The notes beneath the pieces are model-generated. The model had not been told where the DNA came from. It ran no database searches and saw only the letters and a list, made by a program, of their open reading frames with translations. Shown here in pieces: positions 17,649-34,186 of a DNA stretch of 64,000 nucleotides. The stretch is from Calcarisporiella thermophila CBS 279.70 (Eukaryota > Fungi > Calcarisporiellomycota): positions 499,140 to 563,139 of the forward strand of contig NW_027192204.1 of the NCBI RefSeq assembly GCF_041956535.1. Reading direction: 5' to 3'. Both the position numbers and the translations under genes were made by a program. How positions within the stretch are numbered: the stretch's first letter is position 1; every line of letters starts with the position of its first letter.

Positions 17649-20600
17649 ATGATGTGGAGCACAAACGAAGTGCACACCCTTGACTATGCCGCCAATCTCC
17701 CCTACGCCGCAGATCTTTCAGGAGAGGCCGAGGCCATGCTAAAGGAAATTGTGCTGAATCTCTCTGCGTGTGTTCAGGTTGGAGATTGGGCACCCGGGTG
17801 TGTAATGTGGGTCAAGCGACTAAACAGGTCTGAAATGGAATTTGGCCCTCAGCACTAATGCCTCCTTAGCATACTAATTAAGACGCATGATCGCAGTTAT
17901 CTAGATCTCAAGCATTTGCCGCCACGGCCCGTGAGAGCTCAGCTGGCGAGATTGCTATACGAATTGGCGACCACTCCCGGAGTCGATCCGCCAGTCGTGC
18001 AGATATTCGCTAATGCTTGCGCGCGATTAATAAAGTAGCCATTTCCTGACCTCTTTCTCCTCTTACTTCTCTTCTTTTCTTGCTTTGCAACGCACTGACC
18101 CTGTGATTACTACACTTAGGAACAAGAAGCGATTGGGACAATCAGATCTTACCCTTCCTTGGAAGCCACTCTACACTGCTATAGAGCATCTCTTTTTCAA
18201 GAAACCCCCTCGTTATATTGGACCTGAAATGTACATTAAAATACTCTTACACCTAGGTTCTATAAGCTTGATATCTTACACGCATCGTTTTTGTGTATTT
18301 AGCCTAGGTAGTCTCGTCTCTTCGTTGATCCGTCTTGCAAATGCGGCCGAAAGATTCTACCCCCCCACCGCCACCCCTCAGGCTCTTGCCGAATTCCTTC
18401 CAATGTTTTATCTAGGAGATATTTCCCTTATGCTAAGAGCCCAAAGCCTGCTTGTACTCTTCTTGCCAAAATCCTCGTTTCCTTCCGATCCAGATGCCTC
18501 CCCGCAACAATGGCTCCCGACCATATTTCGGCTATGGAGCACTGTAACACACTCCACTGCATTTGATGCGCAATTTATTGCACTAGTAGCGGCGGTCGCT
18601 AAACGGAATGTGGGAGTGCCGAGTGAACTTGGCTATAGCCAACCTTTTGGACTGTTTTCGAACAAACAAGTTAGATGGGTTTTCTCTGCTGGGCTCAAGA
18701 TGTTCCAGCTACAAGTCGGGAGCAGCATGAATGGGATGTCCACTGCAACTTATGGATACGATCATTTAACATTAACATCATCTGTTGGGGTGAAAGAAGT
18801 AAATAATACCCTCTTCGTCCCGATCCCTATATATTTTATACTAACCTGCTATTTTCTTGAAAGGACATCTTCCAAGCATTTGCTAAGTTTGTAGTCTACA
18901 CTATCTTTCCTGTTTCTTCCAACGAAGTAGAATGCACTATGAAACACCTCTCAAACTTAATCCAAGCCGTCGAGTCGTATTTCCATCCATCCAACAGTGG
19001 GAGGTGGACTTCGAACTTGACACGGTTTCTCTATGGTCTTGCCAATGAGTTCTTGGTTCGTTGGCGGAAGGAGCACGAGGATGTAAACTGCACCACTCCG
19101 AGTGAAAGAAGGCTGACCCCAGAGATCCGGCACGAGTTCGTTGCAACATTGAGAGGGATCACATTTTTGGGAATGTTTGGAAAAGACACGTCTGTGGTGG
19201 AGAATGTGCACAAGACCTTGAAATGCCTTGCTTGTAAGTGCCGTATTATCACTTGACTACTCATCGAACTAACCATTCTGTTTCGTATTTTAGGGCTCGA
19301 GCCGTCTCTGATCTTCCCAGGGCTCTTGGAGCGGGTGTATCCCTCACTAGAGACCCTTACTGAGGTAATTTGCCCGCTTGCCCATTATCAACTGTGTACA
19401 ATAATCGGAAACTAATGTAGTCTAATCAGACCCATAGGACAACCACATCAATTGCCTCCCTTGCCTTTGTTGCAAGGCCTCTTCTCGACCGTTCGCATTA
19501 CCCCGCGGGAGCCAAGCACCTCGTCCCTCTTCTCCAGCTTGTACTTCCTGGTTTGGATTTGAACGACCAGCTCAAAACATGGTATTCACTGATGTTCATT
19601 GCGTCTGCTGTGCTTACTGTGCCAATCTACGACCTTACAAGAACGGGAAGTGGTGGTGGTTCGCGCTACCAAGGGGTGGATATTGACGCACGGGAGGGCG
19701 AATTGATGCCGGTTAGTAATGAGGAGGAAGACGCTCTGGTGAAAGCCAGCACTGGAGGCTTTGAAGAATGGCTCGCAAACTTTTTAAGAAGGGTATTTGC
19801 TATACTTGAAAATCTTCCTCAAGATCAATTTGAGGGGAGTGGGAGCGGAAATGTTGAAGGTGAGATTCTGCGCGTGCTGACGACCACCTGTGACCTCTTG
19901 GCGCCCCAGTTATCTCAGGAGCTACACGAGTTAGCGCTACGAATGATTGTTGGCTTTGTTTCTAGTAATGTGATTTCGAATGCAATAAGAGCAATTGGAG
20001 ATATTTGCGAGGCTTTCACTACGCCAGATCCAGCCAAGGCTCTTCGCCATTTCCTCCCACTGTGCCGCTCGAACATTATACTCGAGCTTTCCCATGGCGC
20101 GGCTTCAATGCCTACCCTTTCAACGACACAGGCAGTACACTCTGACACAACGCTGCATTGGTACCAGGCTATTCTCTCTCGAGTTGCGAATTATGCGGGG
20201 AAGACTGCACTTGAGTACAAAGCGGAATTAATAGAGGTGCTAAAAGAAATGCTGGGCAAATGCAAAGCAAGGAGAGGCTATATGTGGGCAAGCGAGTGTT
20301 TGCTGAATCTCTTGGCTTCGATGACGAGCATTTATCCTACTGATTATCGGAGCCTTGATTCCGAGTCGTGGGCTCAGCGGGAACTGTTTTCAGATCATCA
20401 TCGGTTCTGGGGTAGCGTCGGTAACCCAGAAAGACCCAAGATCCAATGGCATGTCCCATCCTCTGCCGAAATCGACTATGCATTGGAACTACTGGATCTA
20501 TTTTTGAAGCCAAGTTTGGCACGTCTAAGGGATTTAATTGAGCATAGGGTTCTACCCGGCAGCTCTAGAGATATTACAGTAGAATTCTGTCTGCATTTGA

Positions 20601-23600
20601 CGGTAGTGAATAGTTGTTTGCTCGGCACATCCACCCTGATCCCAGAGGATGGATCTGAGGAAGATGGGGGGAGTCAAATGGAGATTGACGAGTACGTATA
20701 TTTACTTTGCGCAGTATAGGGTTTCGTTCACTCATCCCCCGTTGTATTTTATTTGATTTTAGTGATGAACTTACGCCTGAATATTACGAAGCTAAGCGCC
20801 TCTCCGCTGGATACTGCTTGATCAACCCAACTGATCCGCGCTACCAAACAGTCCGACACTTATTGCGCGAAGTAGGGGACACCTTACGCGAACTTTCAAG
20901 ATATTTCCGAACTAAGCGAGAGGACGACGTTGAAAGCCTGAAATTGGTGATCAAGGTCATACCATTGAGGGGATTAGCAAATCTCTTGCATGTTTGGCTA
21001 ATAGGGATTGAACTTTAGACCATAGGAGTGTTCTTGTCTAATCGAGGCGTTGCTCGGGCGGAATATGAAGCACAGAAGCAGATGTATGAAATCACAAAAA
21101 AGCATATCAAGGCGCCAGAGGACCACAAGCGTTATCCTCGCGGCAATCTAGTGAAGCGTATGCAAGTATATCACTTGCTTCGTCTACGGCTGAATGCACA
21201 CAATCGGAAACGTACCAGATTACATGACGATTTGTTGCTAGAGCTTACCGAGCTTTCTCTGAGCACATATGCTGAAATTCGGAAAACATCGCAATCCATG
21301 CTGATAGTATCCGGAAGATCGTTTTTAGGCGCAAAGCCAAAGGTGTTGCCATACTGTCTCGACGCACTAATGCCCAATGAGCATGACACCGGCGCAAAAC
21401 GCCTAAAGGGTGCGCTCTATTTACTTAGTAACAAATCATTCCTGCATACGTGCATTCGAGATTGGAGGTTTGTTCCACAGTTCCTAGTGAATTTATGCAA
21501 AGCCCAGCACAGCGACAAGGTAAGCCTCCCCTAGCTCAGAATACAATAGGATTAGCTGAAACTGGTTTTTTATTATTTCATTTAGCCTTCGGTTCAAAAG
21601 ATGATACAAGTTGTAATGATCAACTCAGTTATGAGCTATTACGACCCCTCCTTTGTTGCCACTCCGACTGCAGTGTTAGCGGAGTTTGCAGAACAGCTTG
21701 AGAAAGATGTTCTATCTGACCCCAATTTCAAACTTGTAAGTAAAGATATGGCGAAAGTAAAACGCCGTACAGAAAAGAAGCGCAATGCGGTCATCAAACT
21801 AGAGCAGACTCTCCTCGAGGTTGCAAGTGACCCGTCCGCGCATTGGCGCTATATCCTCATGGCAACTACCTTTTTGTCTAACATCCAAAGACCCGAGATT
21901 GCGCCCAGTGAAACTTGCGCAGCTTTTGCTGCAGATAGCATGATATCTGAGATCCGGAAACAGCGAGAGCTGGGTTTTGTAATGTTAGGCGGTGTGCTAC
22001 TGAGGATTAAGCAGAGGACACTCGCAAAAGGAGACGAGCGGTTAATAGCCTCGAACAGGCTGAGGAACCCGTTAAAACGAGAGGTGGCCACCCCTGTTCC
22101 ACTTCCTGACGACTTCACCGAGAATTTCTTGAAAGCGGCTCAGATGGAGACGACTTTAGAGAATGCCTCTGCCGTGTAAGTGTTGCCGGCCCATTTCTTT
22201 ATTGCTGTTTTTGGTCCTCCTAATTGGATATTATCTAGTGAATATGTGGATAAAACCTATATCGGATGGTATGTTTGGCCAATCACCTATGAAGTCTATG
22301 ATGTGTGCACGAATCAAGTCATCCTTTCCGACATTGAAACGGCTTGTGAGCCTGCCTTTAACCGTCTGCGATCCTCGCTTTGCAGCGAAGAGTGGTGGAA
22401 TCGTCTCTCCACTTACACGTCTCAGGAGGCTGCATTTAGCCGAGAGGAGCATTTCAAGCAAGAAAACGCGCGCCTATACAAGAAAATATTCCAGCTCTTT
22501 GGGGAGGAGGCATTGGAAGCTTCGAAACCTTCTCTTATTAAACTGTGCCGTGCCACCGATCAGAAATCGCACCAGCGTGCGGCTGCAGAGCTAATGGCCG
22601 GAATTATACGTGGATGCAAGCATTGGAACTTGGAGAAGATTGCTCGAATGTGGTCGTTTGTTATACCGCTACTGCGAGAGACTCTTGCGGCTGTGAATCC
22701 GGACACAATTGGCCACTGGAATTATTTCTTCAAGAACACGTGTCGCAACCGTGATCCTCGTCGCCTACGCCCACTTATTGAGCTCATATATGGAATGCGA
22801 TTTGATCCAACATCTCATGCTGCTTTTACTGAATCAGCGAAACTGACGCTAAGGTCCTCTATGCTGCAGACTCTGTCGTGGAGACTTCTCCCGGCGTCGT
22901 TGCCCTTACTCGACCAAATGCTCGAGAATGTGCAACACCCTTACAAGCAAGTTCGTACCGCCATCGCCAATAATATCCGGCGATTACACCAAATGCAATG
23001 GAATCCTTCTTATGCCTCCGTGGCCGCTCTGGTGGAGGAAAACAAAATGCGAAATGGCGAGGGTTTGGGGGTTGGAGGGCTGGAACTAAGAATTGAGATT
23101 CGAGAGCGCATGGATGAGCTCTTGAGCCAGTTGGCTACGTGGCGATCCGAGCGAGTGACTCCCGGCTCAGACTATGTCAATGCGAGCAAAACGATTCTTA
23201 CTTGGATATTAGATGCCATCCAGGGATTGTCCGCGATTACCGTCTACCCCATCGTACTCTCCCTGCTCCCTGAACTGTTTCACATGCGCGAAATAGCGGA
23301 TGACCCAGACCTGCAGTCACTCGCAACCCGTACATTTAACGCGGTAGCTGCTTCAAGCTATCCCCCTGATCTAGTAACACCCTTCCTTGATACTCTAATT
23401 CGTATCCTGACGGAGAATAAGAACTGGCACATCCGTGTGAAATCACTGCCGGTGCTGCAGGTCTTTTTCTTCCGGCACTTGTTCCTCTTTAACCGAGAGC
23501 AGATGGTGTGGGTTACGGACGTGGTCGGCCGTTTGTTAATGGACGTACAAGTGGAAGTAAGACAGCTTGCCGCTGTGACGCTTTCGGGTCTCATCCGATG

Positions 23601-23994
23601 CTCACAACGGGATGCTATTGATGGCTTGAGGGCGCGATTCAGTAGATTGCTAGAGACTCCTCTCCCCTCTCGGAAGCGTTTGAATTCGACGGAGCGTGCC
23701 TCCACCCCTGTTGGATTTCACGAAGCTCTACTGCGTCGCCATGCAGGCGTGTTGGGTCTCTCCTGCTTGGTGCAGGCCTTCCCCTATGAAGTCCCCGAAT
23801 GGATGCCTGCGGTGCTGGTTCAACTTGCTGGTTGCATCACGGACCCCGCGCCCATCCAAGCAACGGTGCGCAAAACTTTTGCAGATTTTAGACGCACACA
23901 CCAAGACACTTGGCACGAGCATGTGCTGCAATTCACAGAAGACCAACTGTCGCTGCTGACCGATTTGTTAATATCGCCATCGTATTATGCCTAA
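17649..23994 (+). CDS. BLM10: Proteasome activator Blm10/PA200 (PSME4)
   Basis: ESYFHPSNSGRW, LETLTE|THRT, HQRAAAELMAGIIRGCKHW, RDPRRL, RRHAGVLGL...PYEVPEWMP, FRRTHQDTW, and the C-terminal SPSYYA (HbYX) end. Confidence 0.95.
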
Positions 23995-25104
23995 CGAATT
24001 CTTTTTATCGACTACTTTTATATTCTCTTCTCAAATCTTAGGTTTTTTTTTTTTCTATTAACTTTTCTTGCATAACCTTCGCCCTCTTCCCTCTCACCCA
24101 TTCTCATACTTATGGCCTTGTCATATTTCGTTTGTTTTTAGAATCCTAGTATAGTTTTCTTTTCCATCTCCTCATAATGAAGGACTTTTCGAATGCCTAT
24201 TCTAACTGCACTAAACTCTCACCGCGTAATCATATTAACAAGTTTGGAGGGCTATCACAGGCATAGAATGCGTGCTCCGGAAGATGAGCAAGGACTTGCA
24301 GCGACTGGATTTCAGCGGTCATTATGTAGACATCTCGCATTATTCAAACTAAACCCGCGTGTTTTCGTATCAATCGGGTATTAAGGAACGTTCTCTAAAC
24401 TTAATGTTCCTTAGAGAGAGGACTATTTGCTTTCCGCCTGCAAGATATTCCGCAGGCTTTTTGATGAATAAAATTCCTGGTGTTAAGCAAAAACCGGTGT
24501 GTACGGTGGACTTTAGTCCACAACATTAGGGTGAATGACTCTTCCGAAACAAAGCAGAGGCTGCATAATAACCAGTTTTCCGATGACACATTTCATAATT
24601 CAAATGAATATCGCAGATAATCGCAAAGTACCAAAACGAGACGACCTGGTCTACAATGTAGGAGAGTGGCCCCCTTCATCTTCTCCGTTAGCACTTGATG
24701 AATTTTTAAATATTACTACAAGGATGGCTGAGTAGAGATAGACACCTGAATTAAAAACAAACAGGCTAGCGCAGTTCGATTAAAAACGGATTAAATAGAG
24801 TAATACAAACAAAATATCGATTGGAACCGAAAATTAGTGATAGCTTAGATTTTCATTGTAATATCGAGATTTCATCGCCCAAGCTATTAATATTTTCGTG
24901 AGAACAAATTTGGAGTATTTTTAAATAAAGTTTAGAACCTAACCTAGCTAATTAATATTACCATTTTCTTCCGCGAGATCCTAAGGTCTCGACAGGTTAT
25001 GTTTTCCTTTTATTATTGCTTCTACTGTTAACTATACTTTTCCTTTATTTACACTAGTTATAATATTCAACTATATACCCTTAGTGAACATTAATGTCGG
25101 AGCT

Positions 25105-28100
25105 ATGGGGTCATGTGGGGATGAGAACTATCGCCGGGAAACCGCCCATGGTTGATAATTTTATAACATAAATATATTTGTATTGCTATTTTACTGAGCA
25201 AAAACAATTGTTTAGGTCAAGGCGGTCAGTTACTTATCAGTTCAGCTTTTAAGCAAAGCAAGCAGATGACGACCCCCAAAAAGGTGTTGCAAAATCAATC
25301 CATAGCCGACCCCAGTATATTGCCGAAGGGTACTAGTGAGAATGAGCAAGACGACGCCGTAGGAGAGGTAGATATTCTGAAAATCAATGCAATAAGTGAA
25401 GACCTCAAGGAATCCAAGGATTTCGAGTGCAACTTGAAGAACTTGAGTACTGTAGCTCTGCAGCCAGATGAGTTTGGGCAAGAAATCGCAAAAGTTATTG
25501 ATGAGAATGAGCAAATTAGCATCGTACCAGCCAATTTTTACAATGAGCCAAAATCAAAAGTATGCAAAGAGCAAGTCGATACAGAGATGCATGACGCCTC
25601 TCCTGGGGATCTTCTTTGTGTATCCTGTCGTCCTTTAGCACTTCTTGCGGATCGAGATCCATTGAAGCCCTCTCCTCTATGCGCCAACTGTCTCAATAAA
25701 CTTTTCCCGCCCATTAAACTGAGCAAGAGTTCCATAAAAACGCAACCGACAAATGAACCGGTTGCTAGTGCCATATGCGAGTCTTGTGGCACACAGAGTC
25801 AGCTGTGCGAGATAGGGGTTCTTAAATTGTGCGCAGAGTGCGTATCACTCTTTGATATGAAGCAACGACGCACCCAAAGAAACCTGATCAGGAAAGAGGA
25901 TATACCGGTATGCAATACGCCTTCACAGGTTAAACAAGTGAAGAAGCGGCCATCTCCAGCAGAAACTAAACAACCCTTAGTCTCCGAACAGGCTCATCCC
26001 AAGAAACGTCTGCAGCTCTCTACCCCAAAAGAAGCCATCCCCTCAAATCCCGAAAAAACGCCACATCAAATTAGCACTACAGGTGCCTTCCTTACCCGCA
26101 GTACTGCAAAGCAGCTCGCTGGCCCGGGTGGATTTGAACCCAATCCCTATGATTACGAATACCGCCAGCGAGTTGAAGTTCTTGGCTTAGACAAGATCTG
26201 GTATTGCGCACGGTTGGTAGCGATGCAGGGTGGAAAGTTACGTGTACACTACAAGGGGTGGTCAAGTGCAGAAGATGAGTGGGTACCGATGGGAAGCCCG
26301 CGGATAAGAGTGTGCCAAGATCAAAATGGATCACTGACGGAGGAAGAAGAGGCTAATGAGAATAACGTTTTTAGGGTGGATGAGGCTGGAAAGGAGAATA
26401 AGAGTGAAATGTTAGAGGCTAATTCGCCTTTGGTTCGAAGAGGACGTGGAGGAGGGCGTGTTCGTGGTAGAAGACGTTCGAGGGGGCGAGGCCTTAAAAC
26501 GGACACTGGATGCAATCGAGAGCCCGAGAGTAGAAGAGGGAGAGGGCGGGGTCGAGTTGGTAGACCGCCCAAGTCGCTTTCGCTTTCTTTTCGTACGTCT
26601 AGTCCTTCTCAATCCACGCCTCCACCATCGAGCACAAAAATCAATACATTGTCAGAGAATTTCACCACGACCGGTGCATTTATGACCCGTCGTACTTTGC
26701 GTCAACTTCAATCTAGCGACATGACGACACAGAGCGGTTTCGAGTTCAATTCTCGGGGATTCTTCCTCTTGCAGCGTGTAAAAATCCTTGGGATGAATGG
26801 CGTGTGGGATACTGGCACACTGATTGCCATGCACCAAGGCCGGGTTCGTATACGGTTTGACGGGTGGGATCGCTCCTATGATGAATGGGTGCTTGCTGAA
26901 AGTAGGCGAATTCGTGAGCTGAGCGAGGAAGAAGCACTCGCAGATATGCCCCCTGAGATAAATTTGGAAAAAGAGAAAGAGGCTGAAAAAAGGGAAGAGG
27001 AGGAGAGGAGGAGGATAAACACTGTACTGGAGAAAGGAATCGATGAGACTGCAAAAACTCTAAAAGAAATAGCCGGGCTAAGAGAAAGGCAACGTCGTAT
27101 CAAAAAGCATCAACACCACCTGATTGAATCAAAGCCATCCAAGCAGCCTCACGAAGAAGTTAGTGAAGACTACACTACCACGGGCGCTTTTATGACCCGT
27201 CGTGCCATCCGAAAAATCTCAGCCGTTGATGCACTCGGTTTTCGTCTCAAACAGCGCATTCAGATTCTTCACATTGATAAACAATGGTATGATGGTGTCG
27301 TGCAGTCTCATCGCCGAGGGAAAATTAAAGTACATTATCGCGGCTGGGAGAGGCGCTACGACGAATGGATCCCGGCCGATAGCCGTCGGATTCGACTTAT
27401 TTATGATGAGGCGAATGAGGTGCGTATCGGCGACTATAGCGATGATGAGTTTGCTGCGGAGGAGAGCAGCTCTTCGGATTCGGAAGTCCAGATGGAATTC
27501 GATGAGAACGATGAATTTGATGAGATAACTTTTCGCCGTAGACCGGGGCGACCGCGGAATCAGCGCCGTGATTTAGACAGATATATTGCTGTTCGACGAC
27601 AACGCGGTCGAAAGTCGAGGAAGAGGGGAGTAAGGCGACGTACTCAAGGGCAGAAAGTGATCGACGAAGAAGAGCAATATGAAAGCGAGCAGGACGAAAA
27701 TCTGGAGGAAAGCGAAAAAAATCTCGTAATGAGCTTCTGGCAGTACATTCAGAATCGACGTGGCCGCCCCACCGACTCCAACTTGCCTGCGGTGAAAAGT
27801 GACGGAATGTGGCGGTATCTGCGCGGCGGCTTTTTAGAGGATATTCGCCCAAGCGATTTGGCAGCTATTCCTGCTGAGGGCAAGCGAATTGAAGCACAAG
27901 ATCGCTTCGAGCAATGGCGACCAGCGACGTTCCTCGAAATACGTGGGCAACGAGCTCTCGTTCACTATGAAGGACTTGCTCATTTTTATGACGAGTGGAT
28001 TCATCTTCGAAATGACCGATTAAGGGTTGCGCCGCGCCCTCTAGTGGATGATGCTCCACAACGGCCGCGTCGAACGCGTAAAGAAAAGGAGGAGGTGGAA

Positions 28101-31100
28101 GAATTGGAGTATGTTGATGAAAATCAGTCTGATGCCGAAGGTAAACTCTTGTTTAATTTCTTCTTGTGGTGATATTTATACTCAAACTTTTATGCGAATA
28201 AGCTGGCGATGAATGGCGTGTATACTGCAATCGTTGTCGAGTGGTTATTAAACACTTTAGGTTGGTAGTGACCACGGAGGTATAATTTAACTCGGTCCCT
28301 TACGTTTATTTTAAAAATTTGATATAGATACTACTGCACTTATTGCGAGAAGCCATCGGCCGGGGACGACTATGAGAGTTTTGAGCTCTGTCTTAATTGT
28401 TTCTCTAATGATTTCCCTTTCTGGCACCAGCACCCCCGTTCCTCCTTTGCGGCCCAGGCCATTGTTGAGCTGGATTCTTCGGAGCAAAAGAAGCCCACTA
28501 GAGTTGTAGGCGAGGTGGTTTCAACCTACGAAAAAGATGGCTTTGATACCGATTATACAGAGGATACGGAGCCGAGCATTATTCGCCCTGGTGTGGTCCT
28601 TGGTTCTGACCAGGGCTATCTCTATCTTCAGCAATGGCGTAAGCGAAAGATATGTGCATTTTGCAACGACGACGACACCTCAGTCCTGGGCGAGTTTGTC
28701 GGCCCATATCCCTTTGTAACCTGCGTTGTTAATCGCAATGGTCAAATTCAGAAGAAATCGTTTTGGGCCCACGATGCGTGCGCGAGATACTCCCCAGAAG
28801 TACTTGTTTCAAAAGAGGGAGAGTGGTATAACGTCTCCGTGGCATTAAGACGTGGCCGGGCGATGGTACTTATAAACCGCGTTGATTTTCAATGGTCGAT
28901 AATAATGAGTATTGTTGTTAGAAATGTGCCGCCTGTCGAGATAAAGGGGCCACCATTGGGTGCTTCGAGCCAAAATGCAACAAGAGCTACCATATTGCAT
29001 GCACAGAGAAGCCCCTCTGGTTCTTCGAAGATGGGGTTATATTCTACTGCCCACAACATGAGGCACTCTGCAATAAAAATGGTGGGTTTTTAGATCAAAT
29101 GACAGAGATTTTGCCATTTAGTCTTGCTGACATTCTTTTCTAGACGCTTACGAAGAGCTTTTCAACTGTGATGTGTGCAACGTTAAATTACAAGAAGGTA
29201 CATGGTACACATGTACCGGATGCGAGACTTTCTTTTCTACATTTGATTTGTGTAAAGAGGTGAGCACTGCATGCTGTACTATCACTTCCCACCCGTAATA
29301 GATTAATGCTTGCTATAGTGCTTCTCGCAGAAATTCCCAACTGACCACCCTCACGATCAAGACTTTTTCGAAGAAACATGTTAGCTGTTTTCCTCTCGAG
29401 ATTCATTGAACTTTTGTAACTGTTTTTGTTTTTTATAGCTCTAGATATTATAAAGGAACTAGAGGAGGAGCGAGCTGCAAGCATTGCACGTCAAGAGGCC
29501 ACGAAAGGAACTGCTCCAGGTTGCATTGAATGTTCTCGAGATATATATGGCTTTTCTAATAATAATATTTTCTTACGCAATTCTAAACAGCCCAACGGAA
29601 GAAGAGTCTATTTCCAAAGATATCCCGCAAAAAGTCAAACAATATTCATTGCTCCTATTGCTGGGCCACGACATCGGCTTGCTGGCGTAAGGGATTCAGC
29701 GGAGTGCTCATGTGCGAGGCCTGCTTTAAAATGGGGCTTTCCGAACAAGATATTGATCCGCTTGGGGACACTTCTCATCCCGCGGTGGCGGGCGGTTCCG
29801 ATGATCGCTATGCGGCGGCCATCGAGGATTACGCTCATACCCCGTATTTGACAAGAATGTATTGCGCGGCCGATAAATTCGATGACGCCAAATCTCGGGC
29901 ACTCTATCTTGACACGTATGGACCCGCTGAGCACCAGCTGTTTTCGCTACCATTTTCAAGCAGCTACTTCGATATCCCAGGGAGAGCTCCGCGATGGGCG
30001 ACCCATTCCGGCACAGGTGAGATCAGCAGTATCCTTACTAGACTAGATGATCTCCAAACTTAATCTCTATTTTAGATTACCATGGCACTTGGCTCCCTCA
30101 AACTGTACGGCGTACTTTACTGCGATTCACGAGAAAGAATGAAAAGATCTTGTCCAACTTTCTTGGTCGAGGTTGGTGCTTTTGCTATAATTAGTATGCA
30201 TTCTTATTCCCAATTTGCAACTTTTGTATAAATATGCTCCCAGGAACCGATGCGATTGAATCTTTTCTGCTGGGAAGAAAGTAAGTGGAGGTTTTCCAAC
30301 CCATTCATTCGTGACCAATAGACCTCACATAACAAACACGCATACAGATGCTGCGGAGTGGATATCAATCCGGCTGCAGTAGGGCTGTCTCAGCGCAACT
30401 GTTCTTTTGCAATACCCCAGGACCAAGGTATCACTGCCGAGCATCGCCCTATAATAGTGCAAGCCGACTCGCGCAAATTGACTGGCGCACTATTTGAGGA
30501 TGAGGCATATGACCACGTTCTCAGCCATCCTCCTTATAAAGACTGTGTTATTTATTCAACCCATATCGAGGGGGACTTGTCTAGGTAACCCCTTGAATTG
30601 ACTCCGCGGTATCTGCCCCCTAGACTCATTCCTCGCTATTATAAAAATAGCTTCTCTAGTTTGGAAGAGTTCCAAGCCGAAATGGACAAGGTTATTAAGG
30701 AGTCTTGGAGGTAAAGCAGCGTTTTTAAATCCTGTGGATTCGAGTTAATATTTCACACGCGATCTAGATTATTGCGAATGGATCGACGCCTTACGCTGGG
30801 CATTGGTGATAATCGAGAGCGTTGCTTTTATATTCCCGTCGGCTATAAATTGATCCGACAATACATCGATAATGGTTTCGAGCTAGAAGAGCTGGTTGCT
30901 AAGAACTGACCTCTATATTTGACCCCTGCACTTGGTATTGACGACCTTTTCTATTTCTCAGGTGGTGAAGCGCCAGCGGTATTGTAGTGCATTTGGGCTT
31001 GGTACCTACTTATGCGTTCAGTTTGATTTTCTTCTCTTCACGCACGAATTCATCGTCACCTTCAAAAAGATGGAACCAAGCGATGTCTTCAAGTATACCC

Positions 31101-32199
31101 TTTGCCAAAGTAATTTCAGGCTAATATTAGCGACCCCCTTTCTGGCATCACATATCTCTTATATTATCTTAGACGCAAACTGGAGCGAGTTCGTCAAAAT
31201 CACGCGTACTCAGCATGAAATCCCATCCTCTCCCATTACACGGCATAGTGTCATCATGGGCACGGTCTGGACCTTCAAACCTACCCCAGAGTACTCTTTT
31301 GTCCAGCTCTGCTCCTCTAGGATGGTTGAGCGGTTCGGAAAGGACGCGACCAATTGTGAGAAGATCAGCTTGGAGTTTCTAGTCCCCCAGGTAAGGCTTC
31401 AAAAGCTGCAATATTAGGGTTGCATCGTCTAACACCATTATTGGACAGGATAATAAGGACAAGAATGGTCAAGCAAAAGAGCAGAGCTTCGCAAAGGATA
31501 CAGACGAGCCTCTGTCTGAATACGAGAAGAGCCGTTTAGAAAGGATCCGGGAGAATAACCAGATGCTACTCTCGCTGGTATGTAGTGCGGCATCGATATG
31601 TAATAGACAGGTGTATTGATAGCACATTTCTACCCTAGGGATTGATCTCCGAATTGAGCGAAGAATCCGACGATGTGAGCCACTATCTCATCCTCGTTTC
31701 CAAACCGCCCCTCCCCCCCCCAGCGCCCTTGACCATGATCTTGGTTCCGCATGTCTCAAATCAGTTTATGGATCTTGAACACGTTGACAGCTATCGAACG
31801 GCCATATGTGTCCTTGCGGAGGAGGCATGCTCGCGCCTCTCTACAGGCGGATTTTTCATAGTAGGGGCACAAGACGCGCGCTCTCCACCTCCGAAATCTC
31901 GCCTATGGCCGCTCTCCATGCTACTACTGGAGGATATCGGTAAGAAGGTGGGAGAGGAAATGAAGCTGAAGGAGCTGGTCATCACAGTCCCGGATGGCTA
32001 TCAGCAGGATAGAAGGAAGATCACGTCCATCGACGAGCACGTGGAGGAAAATTGCATTCTGGATATGAGGGAGGAGGATGTGGAGCAATTGCCCATTGTC
32101 CATGTAAGTTTCGCCCTTGCTGTTCACTAATAGAATGGATCTATAAAGTCGTTTTTCTTTTTCAACTAGGCATGCTATCTGGTTTTCATGAAGATGTGA
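25105..32199 (+). CDS. Multidomain chromatin reader fused to an N6-adenine/N4-cytosine-type methyltransferase (4x Tudor/chromo-barrel, AT-hooks, ZZ, ePHD, ZZ, GATA, MTase, KRI, inactive MTase); about 18 introns
   Basis: Manual splicing with GT-AG sites keeps one open frame to TGA at 32197-32199. Key motifs: VHYKGW...DEW repeats; CNRC...YCTYC...LCLNCF; WAHDACARYSPEV...CAAC...GATIGC...YHIAC; CSYC-x17-CEAC; WATHSGTDYHGTW, NFLGRGT, GVDIN, SHPPY; YEKSRLERIRENNQMLLSLGLI. The start at 25105 is tentative (alternative 25266). Confidence 0.85.
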
Positions 32200-32477
32200 A
32201 CTTTTTATATACCACGATTATGGATAATATAATATAAAAATGGAATGCCCCTCAATTGCTCTTTTTCCCTTTAAAAAGATCGAATTTACGACTAATAGTC
32301 ACAGCCCAAGTGACTTTTCCAAACTATAAAAACCGAATGCTTAATATTCCGTGATTAACTGGGCTTATTGTGAGTGCAAACAGGATCCATCATCATATCA
32401 GTGGCCCATGCCCGTTCATCACTGACCTGTTTCCAAAGCCTTGCTCTTTATTGATAACAACTTCTGGTGGAATTTTC

Positions 32478-34186
32478 ATGGCGAAGCGAGGAACGCGTGT
32501 GCGTCAACGCTTACGGCGGCGACAGAAGAAACAAAAGGATTCTAACGACAATTCGGAGCGACGAAGACTCATTAATGAAGCTGCCGATCGTCTCGACCTA
32601 CAGAGACTGCGCATGCTGGCAAGAAGTGGCTCGGGCTTCTTGGATAACGCGGGTAGAAGGAGAGCTTGGTAACACTGCCTAGAGATGGTCTCATTGGAAA
32701 TACCATTCTAATTCTCGTGTTATAAGGCCTATACTCTTACGATGTTACCAATACGATGAAGACATTGATCCCATTGGTAATTAGAAAGCGCTTTCTCACT
32801 TTCTAGCACTGTTGAATGGCACACTGCTGGGTTTCTTATAGAAAAGCATCCAGAGGAATACCAAGTAGCACTAGACGTCGAACGATCTTTGAACCATTAC
32901 AGTGGGTGTATGACTACTTCCTGTGACTAAAATATGAGGATATAGGGCTGATTTTATATTTTTAATGTTAGGCCTGGAAGAGGACGAGAAACCTCAAAAG
33001 CGAAAAGAATTGCATGAAGTGATTATGAGTGTGCTGAGACGGCACCCAAAGTTGCATTACTATCAGGTACTCTCCACGCTATTATTCTGTTAGCCTAGAG
33101 GGCCACTAATACTATTGTATTCGCATCGCAGGGTTTCCATGATATATGTACGTGCTTTCTGCTTGTTCTTGGAAAACGCCAGGCAGTTAAGGCCTCCGAA
33201 CATGCTGCTCTCTTCTTCTTAAGATATCCTTTTAGTTTCGCATTTTGCTCTCTTTCTCTTCTCCACCTCTATTTTTTTTTGGATATATTCTCTTAACTAC
33301 CATGCACAGATGCTATGCTTGAGTCCCTAGAGCCCACCATGCGTCAACTTTCTCTCCTCATCTCCATTCTCAAACGAGAGGATGCAGAGATACACCGATT
33401 TCTAGAAGAGTAAATGTCACGAAGCCCTTAGCTTATAGCTTTCATTGGCTGACCCTGCTCTCTTTCTCTCCCACCCTTTCAGGTCAGAGACTCTACCCTA
33501 TTTTTGTATTAGTTGGATATTGACATGGTGTAGCCACGATTTACAAGCGCTCGACAAAGTGGCCAGGCTCTTCGACCTGTTTCTGGCCTCTAATCCCCTT
33601 ATGCCACTCTACGTGGCCTCCGCTGTATGTAATCTACTTTGCCCTTAGTCTTTTTTTTTTTCAAGCAATTTCACACTCTCGAGATATAGGTTGTGCTTAA
33701 CCGTAAGAAAGAGTTACTCCTGTGCGAGAAGGACAGCGCGATGATCCACTCCTTCCTGTCCAAGTTCCCCCAAGATGTCGAGGTGGATGAACTCGTCGCA
33801 CAAGCCCTCGAGCTCTTCTACCGGTATCCACCCCATAAACTGCAGCGAATATCAAAAATTGGCTTGGATGAGACGTAAATAGTTACTTTTCATATCTAGG
33901 AGGTAGAATGTGATCTAAGGAGGCTCCGTCCTATTTCTATAGATCTGCCGTCAACACCTATGACAAGCTTTGGTTTAAACTTGACCCACAAGCGAAACTC
34001 GACCGGGAGGCCGTGATGAACATTCTCTCGCTAGCACCTGCAAACCGTCGGCCGAAACGGCTGGCCTTCTGGGCGCCTCAGTCCAGCAGTGTGGCAATGG
34101 CCTTTATTGCACTGTCGGGAGTGTCAACCGCTGCGGTACTCTTACTCATGGCCACGCAAATGCTTCGGCGTTCCTTGGAACCATAG
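32478..34186 (+). CDS. GYP8: TBC1D20/Gyp8-type Rab GTPase-activating protein with C-terminal transmembrane segment
   Basis: RRRAW|PILL, QVALDVERSL, LHYYQ|GFHDI, LRDAM, PYFCISWILTWCSHDL, RLFDLFLASNPLMPLYVASA, and a hydrophobic C-terminal anchor. Confidence 0.88.
33224..33307 (+). other. U12-type (minor spliceosome) AT-AC intron
   Basis: 5' end ATATCCTTTT; branch-like TTCTCTTAAC at 33288-33297; 3' end CATGCAC. Removal gives in-frame ...LFFLR-DAMLE.... Confidence 0.85.

Follow-up and report, generated by a model that had tools for sequence, protein, structure and literature searches.

A gene for a reader-fused tandem methyltransferase in Calcarisporiella thermophila, a predicted chromatin-tethered DNA N6-adenine methyltransferase

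A single predicted gene of the fungus Calcarisporiella thermophila CBS 279.70 joins an array of putative histone and DNA readers to an active methyltransferase domain of bacterial type and to a second, degenerate copy of that domain. It occupies positions 25266-32199 on the plus strand of the 64,000-nt stretch of contig NW_027192204.1 analysed here (the window), and an exon-by-exon check of the DNA gave a product of 1,953 aa. In early-diverging fungi the genome carries abundant N6-methyladenine (6mA) that co-localises with active-chromatin marks, and how this methylation is aimed at chromatin is debated. With moderate confidence, we propose from sequence comparisons that its product is a DNA N6-adenine methyltransferase tethered to chromatin and belongs to Group-1 Clade 4, a clade defined in basal fungi by Iyer, Zhang and Aravind (2016, BioEssays, PMC4738411). 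The gene adds a member to a family known from earlier in silico work, as the preliminary description of this DNA had suspected in remarking that the class might not be new.

The exons were read by hand from the DNA, and each boundary (GT/AG), phase and stop was then checked. From the ATG at 25266 to the TGA at 32197-32199 the model has 18 exons and 17 introns; every intron is GT-AG and measures 56-72 nt, the phases agree throughout and the frame is free of stops. The preliminary description had counted about 18 GT-AG introns, which is correct if the 5' mini-exon of the public model is included; its statement that the open reading frames (ORFs) are fragments only was too strong, as exon 1 by itself is a 968-aa ORF. 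The public counterpart, P0001 (XP_069250389.1 / KAL1919119.1, locus VTP21DRAFT_2501), is 99% identical, maps back exon by exon and agrees with our exon table apart from the last exon. The gene is single-copy in the intron-rich C. thermophila genome. Domain searches were run on single exons and on database proteins, with P0001 representing the joined sequence (without the last 9 residues). Pfam searches of single exons were too insensitive for the methyltransferase, and the domain is clear on full-length P0001 and its orthologues.

Catalytic module, reader array and relatives

The active domain matched the profile PF01555 (N6_N4_Mtase) at 34.7 bits in P0001 (cut-off 26.7), at 50.5 bits in the orthologue P0006 and at 72-111 bits in prokaryotic relatives, in which PF01170 (the Trm11/RlmL family) reached at most 30.5 bits. 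Its landmarks are WATHSG.DYHGTW, FLGRGT (30159-30171 and 30244-30248), GVDIN (30355-30369), HPPY, GDLS, GDNRE, KRQR and HE. Across 34-37 sequences, WATHSG.DYHGTW, F.G.GT, the acidic residue of GVDIN, HPPY, GDLS, GDNR, KRQ and HE are invariant or nearly so. The catalytic HPPY, which the preliminary description had already read at 30526-30537, is shared by all homologues, eukaryotic and prokaryotic, that cover the site; its first residue lies outside the classical [DNS]PP[YFW], and PPY is retained. The PF01555 match falls into two swapped pieces, the profile's C-terminal motif-I half lying upstream of its N-terminal motif-IV half. The order of motif I (FLGRGT, 30159-30248) before motif IV (HPPY, 30526) is unpermuted, and by its motifs the domain is a relative of the beta class in unpermuted order and, strictly, not a beta-class member. 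When a profile of the domain was compared with PDB sequences, the beta-class DNA methyltransferase 2zie ranked first (2e-16) and Trm11 next (8e-10), with N4C, 'DpnA', MboIIA and CcrM DNA methyltransferases further down. The match to the H. pylori 'DpnA' (5hek/5hfj), the sole 'DpnA' compared, covers motif I only and stands behind 2zie and Trm11 (E 6e-7). In Pfam scans P0001 had no match to PF02384 or PF05063; PF01170 reached E 0.076 on the core exon and was absent from the P0001 matches. NCBIfam held no model for the fungal module, and TIGR01177 gave 35-41 bits in the prokaryotic relatives against a cut-off of 316.

The second domain lacks both motif I and PPY. Profile-profile comparison showed homology between it and the active domain (hhalign probability 94%, E 2e-8), and the elements GDNR / GFELEEL / THEF..FKK of domain 1 are mirrored in domain 2 by QD.R / LKEL / PIVH.YL.F.K. 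The columns of the KRI motif, which is inserted in this dead domain, are present in all eukaryotic alignment rows and in eukaryotic members only. A complete dead domain was modelled from the Geosiphon orthologue P0004 with a predicted local distance difference test score (pLDDT) of 85, and the model matched only class-I S-adenosylmethionine (SAM) methyltransferase folds in all top 50 rows, at a middling Z of 6.5-8.3. An AlphaFold2 (AF2) model of both domains of the C. thermophila protein reached a pLDDT of 82.9 and a predicted template-modelling score (pTM) of 0.85; this structure prediction, which does not speak to function, suggests that the active and dead domains form one rigid body. The preliminary description was right that a single gene carries a reader array, a bacterial-type exocyclic-amino methyltransferase and a dead copy split by KRI.

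The modules upstream of the tandem are those of Clade 4 fusions, and the domain order proposed earlier holds. The four chromo-barrel/MBT-like repeats, the extended PHD and the second ZZ finger reach Pfam cut-offs, the GATA-like finger stays below, and the CxxC pairs, the first ZZ-like finger and the AT-hooks are recognised by pattern only (Table 1). The chromo-barrel repeats also gave overlapping Pfam matches to SAWADEE, MSL3 chromo-like, MORC2 chromo-like and Tudor-knot. A regular-expression search found the motif [HR][YF].GW....DEW kept in repeats 1-3, with L replacing the first W in repeat 4. A further motif, TTGAF[LM]TR, occurs three times (window 26076-27200), each time some 20-30 residues ahead of chromo barrels 1-3, and has no known family. 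Pfam scans gave no family match for the N-terminal CxxC pairs, which are probably zinc ribbons, and none for the first ZZ-like finger. An Actinomortierella relative (P0078, from the 90%-identity cluster of P0006) bears the UniRef name GATA-type domain protein. By the known roles of their families, the modules of the array would read histone marks.

An exhaustive HMMER search with the core exon returned 77 proteins, and orthologues in more than 20 early-diverging fungi share the architecture. The members in Mucoromycota include Calcarisporiella, Mucor lusitanicus (MUCCIDRAFT_114945, P0010) and Hesseltinella; other fungal members belong to Glomeromycotina, Mortierellomycotina, Zoopagomycota and many chytrids, and beyond the fungi the family extends to Chromosphaera perkinsii and Corallochytrium limacisporum, both unicellular holozoans. 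At least 571 loci in the species-representative genomes encode prokaryotic tandem HPPY enzymes of ~500 aa (for example P0067, P0062 and P0069/P0079). In the alignment these relatives already have the active-plus-dead layout, without KRI and without readers, and they share the WATH.G.Y.G.W...HPPY pattern that the preliminary description had likened to prokaryotic DNA methyltransferases. The tandem catalytic module descends from such ~500-aa enzymes. A tree was computed under LG+G4 with a quick search and with support from the Shimodaira-Hasegawa-like approximate likelihood ratio test (SH-aLRT) only. All 29 eukaryotic rows formed one clade (SH-aLRT 100), the two holozoans were sister to the fungi (96), and the fungal branching broadly tracked the species tree. 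One ancient acquisition followed by losses fits this tree and is offered tentatively, the holozoan rows being long-branched.

Gene neighbourhoods of the prokaryotic relatives point to restriction-modification. A gene for the DpnII endonuclease (PF04556) adjoins the relative in L010/L011 and in seven of 80 sampled loci, where Pfam confirmed it at 121-286 bits. The gap between endonuclease and methyltransferase genes is 7-33 bp in L054, L058, L072 and L075, and ~0.6 kb with one small ORF in L078. Four loci in all, L005, L007, L059 and L063, have a D12 (Dam-type) methyltransferase next to the relative; of the seven sampled loci with DpnII, two have a Dam-type enzyme as well. No other methyltransferase was found among ORFs of at least 120 aa within 3.5 kb in L054 and L075, where the immediate neighbours scanned were housekeeping genes, and L010 had no second methyltransferase among the called genes of the locus. 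DpnII cleaves unmethylated GATC, and adenine methylation blocks the cutting. The simplest reading is that the prokaryotic HPPY enzymes make Gm6ATC on duplex DNA. This speaks for adenine as the base that an H-PPY site methylates, and it weakens the inference of action on single strands only.

Other neighbours recur in these loci. In 12 of 80 loci the HPPY methyltransferase has as its immediate neighbour a conserved protein of 450 aa that belongs to no Pfam family; this partner was seen at L001 9614-11714 and also in L019, L021, L024, L026, L028, L039, L042, L044, L055, L063, L066 and L092. Partner proteins of 214 aa and 364 aa adjoin the methyltransferase in five and three loci, respectively. 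Variable partner genes are typical of restriction-modification systems, and the 450-, 214- and 364-aa proteins may be uncharacterised restriction endonucleases. In a Paceibacterota locus (L058 3526-8819), the pair of HPPY methyltransferase and DpnII genes sits between genes for a CAP12/Pycsar-type TIR effector and a GmrSD endonuclease, an arrangement that is a small defence island. The public names of P0061 and P0079 conflict ('TRM11 family SAM-dependent methyltransferase' versus 'DNA methyltransferase'), and gene context favours the latter.

Substrate, mechanism and alternative readings

In the mechanism we propose, the reader array would dock on particular nucleosomes by way of H3-tail and methyl-lysine marks, and would also bind DNA that is AT-rich or carries GATA. 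The active domain would flip out an adenine and move a methyl group from SAM to its N6 position in DNA. The dead domain would stand in for the second protomer of beta-class dimers and help to hold the DNA, a part likened to that of MTA9 for MTA1 and of METTL14 for METTL3. On the motifs, profiles and gene contexts described above we favour DNA as the substrate, with RNA as the main rival.

Several observations count against this proposal. The H that opens motif IV is unusual, and its fit with adenine methylation is deduced solely from the DpnII context. A DpnII neighbour was present in just 7 of the 80 sampled prokaryotic loci, and the branch that bears the eukaryotic clade is long; because of both, target specificity cannot be carried over from the prokaryotic kin. 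The top-ranked Foldseek match is an archaeal Trm11, a tRNA m2G enzyme (E 5e-10), and NCBI assigns the prokaryotic relative P0061 to the 'TRM11 family'. Public RNA sequencing runs were sought for transcript support and none was listed. The literature searched yielded no experimental study of Clade 4 members, eukaryotic or prokaryotic, and searches on HPPY methyltransferases, fungal PF01555 and DpnA in basal fungi found nothing besides Iyer et al. 2016. Finally, deletion of MetB in Mucor lusitanicus abolishes asymmetric 6mA and deletion of MTA1 abolishes all symmetric 6mA. With MetB and the MTA1 complex accounting for asymmetric and symmetric 6mA, the conditions tested leave little bulk 6mA to a third enzyme. 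The orthologue of the gene described here (P0010) was outside the candidates tested in the Mucor deletion study. A role in bulk 6mA in vegetative cells is thus unlikely, and the role may be local, stage-specific or transient.

The same Mucor results would suit a chromatin-associated RNA methyltransferase, a DNA enzyme re-used after its transfer to make m6A on nascent or chromatin-bound RNA or to methylate guanine N2 in the manner of Trm11. Such re-use has precedent, since N6A methyltransferases of eukaryotes have turned to RNA more than once (Iyer et al. 2016, PMC4738411). The active domain is colinear with Trm11, which is the best structural match, the runner-up in the profile ranking and the second-best sequence match (E 4e-5). 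The domain profile and PF01555, however, favour DNA enzymes. Motif order by itself would lead Foldseek to prefer Trm11, given the circular permutation of the beta-class DNA enzymes, and for the same reason the fold search fails to separate DNA from RNA enzymes. The weak TIGR01177 matches and the NCBI name of P0061 likewise speak for RNA, but PF01555 scores far above PF01170 in the relatives, whose genes lie in restriction-modification contexts. No THUMP or other RNA-binding domain was matched in protein scans, and the fused modules (GATA, AT-hook, extended PHD and chromo barrels) are of kinds predicted to bind DNA and histones. We therefore regard an RNA substrate as unlikely.

A narrower version of the DNA proposal confines the enzyme to single-stranded DNA, as exposed in replication, repair, transcription or recombination. 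Iyer et al. 2016 group the family with DpnA, which is the second methyltransferase in DpnII systems and acts on single strands. The four relatives beside a D12 enzyme occupy the position of DpnA, and a transient substrate would suit the missing bulk signal in the Mucor mutants. However, in L054 and L075, which have no other methyltransferase nearby, the HPPY enzyme must protect duplex DNA, and L010 likewise has no other among its called genes; the 'DpnA' of the PDB (H. pylori, 5hek) belongs to the permuted beta-class enzymes and matches only middlingly. Restriction to single strands is accordingly improbable. KMT9 provides a precedent for an [N]PPY enzyme whose target is an amino group of a protein. 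A histone substrate (lysine or glutamine, as for HemK/PrmC and N6AMT1/KMT9) would accord with the many histone readers, and weak matches to PrmC/HemK models were seen; against this, both gene context and the nearest families are those of DNA methyltransferases. A non-catalytic chromatin scaffold would sit badly with catalytic and SAM-binding motifs that are all strictly conserved, and we give protein methylation or scaffolding very little credence.

Beyond assigning the gene to a chromatin-tethered DNA N6-adenine methyltransferase, we raise a more specific possibility, which we hold as doubtful. The family may form a third lineage of 6mA writers, inherited vertically from the ancestor of fungi and unicellular holozoans. 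Its HPPY pseudo-dimer, derived from GATC-specific enzymes of DpnII systems, would be aimed by histone readers, act on duplex DNA in defined chromatin states or life stages, and have been missed in vegetative Mucor surveys. This is the sole candidate adenine methyltransferase in these genomes that bears its own histone and DNA readers. The family is conserved from chytrids to Mucoromycota and in two holozoans, and it has stayed outside published knock-out surveys. The identity of the substrate would settle the question of a third writer and whether H-PPY methylates adenine, and its proof would supply a natural reader-writer fusion for DNA adenine methylation. What is gained here is a corrected gene model together with two predictions, namely that the prokaryotic kin have GATC-type activity on duplex DNA and that the dead domain serves as a built-in partner.

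Gene boundaries, neighbouring genes and feature coordinates

In the public model the gene is fused to a downstream RabGAP-TBC gene (PF00566) and the last 30-nt exon is skipped. The fusion segment covers window 32104-34183, or residues 1967-2368 of P0001. More than 25 homologues end in ...LPIVHACYL[IV]FMK, matching the last exon here (...PIVH/ACYLVFMKM, then the stop), and a TBC domain was found in none of nine full-length orthologues scanned with Pfam. The fusion would also require an intron of ~330 nt, compared to 56-72 nt for all others. On these three grounds the fusion was rejected as an annotation error. The stop at 32199 is correct and the public 3' end is wrong; the preliminary description, which had ended the gene at 32199, was better here than the public annotation. 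The RabGAP-TBC gene likely has its own start (MAKRGTRV...) near 32478. Upstream, at ~19550-23994 on the plus strand, lies a gene for a large HEAT-like protein whose last ORF ends in ...SPSYYA and which by eye resembles the proteasome activator Blm10/PA200; ~1.1-1.3 kb separates it from the methyltransferase gene.

Table 1. Features of the methyltransferase gene, in window coordinates
Feature	Position	Strand	Basis and remarks
Optional 5' mini-exon MSELW, 16 nt	25094-25109	+	P0001 only; candidate start ATG 25094; intron 25110-25214; would raise the intron count to 18
Coding region	25266-32199	+	Exon table with phases
Two CxxC...CxxC cysteine pairs	25617-25691 and 25776-25841 (span 25617-25841)	+	Cysteine pattern only
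Four chromo-barrel/MBT-like repeats	26154-26309, 26760-26915, 27240-27395, 27876-28025	+	Pfam MBT E 5e-23
Three GRP AT-hook-like motifs	26559-26567, 27546-27554, 27762-27770	+	Pattern; RG/RK-rich linkers
First ZZ-like finger	28203-28440	+	Cys/His pattern only; split by intron beginning 28261
Extended PHD (PHD + zf-HC5HC2H)	28653-29059	+	PF13771 39.5 bits (cut-off 29.1), PF13832 32.2 bits; interrupted by intron 28866-28921
Second ZZ finger, exons 5-6	29144-29379	+	PF00569 21.7 bits, cut-off 21.4 (narrow pass)
GATA-like finger, C-x2-C-x17-C-x2-C	29650-29724	+	PF00320 21.2 bits, under cut-off 26.8
Active amino-methyltransferase domain, exons 8-14	29960-31070	+	PF01555 over cut-off, invariant columns, AF2 model
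Catalytic motif IV, HPPY	30526-30537	+	Sequence
Degenerate second methyltransferase domain, exons 15-18	31173-32196	+	hhalign; ends ...PIVH/ACYLVFMKM
KRI motif YE..R...I..N...L..LGL	31521-31644	+	Alignment; inserted in dead domain, split by intron 31578-31638
Last intron, 66 nt	32104-32169	+	Public model: same donor, far acceptor near 32436

Comparison with known systems

Clade 4 as described in PMC4738411 has an unpermuted catalytic domain, a second, inactive methyltransferase domain split by KRI, and prokaryotic kin in DpnII systems, and its members were predicted to act on single-stranded DNA by analogy with DpnA. The gene of C. thermophila has the same unpermuted order, reader fusions, inactive KRI-bearing second domain and DpnII-linked prokaryotic kin, and in itself it shows no difference from the clade. 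Three findings go beyond that work: the family's occurrence in two holozoans, the dead domain already present in prokaryotes, and relatives that are in some cases the sole methyltransferase found beside DpnII. The prokaryotic tandem enzymes share WATH.G.Y.G.W, F.G.GT, HPPY, GDLS, GD.R and HE with the fungal module, to which they are 26-32% identical, and their dead domain ends in I.H.YLLVY. Unlike the fungal proteins they have no KRI, and an N-terminal C2H2-like finger and a helix-turn-helix-like segment replace the readers. Next to their genes lie those for DpnII endonucleases, Dam-type methyltransferases or unknown partners that recur.

The beta-class N6A/N4C enzymes (PF01555; TTHA0409/2zie, M.MboIIA, CcrM and M.PvuII) are the best sequence family, matching through both halves of the profile and in their amino-methyltransferase chemistry. 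Their motifs run from IV to I, in contrast to I to IV here, and their motif IV starts with D, N or S rather than H. Beta-class enzymes, TTHA0409 (2zie) included, work as dimers (PMC7544214), whereas the 'dimer' here is a covalent tandem of an active and a dead domain. Trm11 (the tRNA m2G10 methyltransferase; 5e71, 6zxw) resembles the active domain in its colinear topology and is the best fold match. It differs in that the gene here has no THUMP, that PF01170 and TIGR01177 fall far under their cut-offs, and that the prokaryotic kin sit in a restriction-modification context and not in one of tRNA modification. Trm11 itself has a DPPY motif and the partner Trm112.

The MTA1 complex (MTA1/AMT1, MTA9 and P1/P2) is the established writer of symmetric ApT 6mA in ciliates and early-diverging fungi. 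It is alike in outline, combining an active methyltransferase, an inactive paralogue and DNA-binding parts, but it belongs to the MT-A70 family (PF05063, DPPW) and consists of separate subunits. MetB of Mucor (Lax et al. 2024) is a PF02384, MmeI-like gamma-class adenine methyltransferase of bacterial origin in early-diverging fungi. The likeness to MetB suggested in the preliminary description does not hold: P0001 has no PF02384 match, and MetB, which has a target-recognition domain of its own and lacks a reader array, is related to the gene here by the Rossmann fold only. The C. thermophila genome has four MT-A70 loci on other contigs (C21, C10, C8 and C2) and two separate PF02384 loci (C39 and C5), and thus all three kinds of candidate adenine methyltransferase. 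Reader fusions have also arisen elsewhere. The reader of the bdelloid rotifer enzyme N4CMT is a chromodomain. In N4CMT a horizontally acquired bacterial amino-methyltransferase is joined to its chromatin reader (PMC8885841), and the chlorophyte-type Dam fused to PWWP/ZfCW is an analogous fusion (Iyer 2016, PMC4738411). N4CMT (permuted, SPPY, N4-cytosine) and the chlorophyte Dam-class enzymes are acquisitions independent of the family described here.

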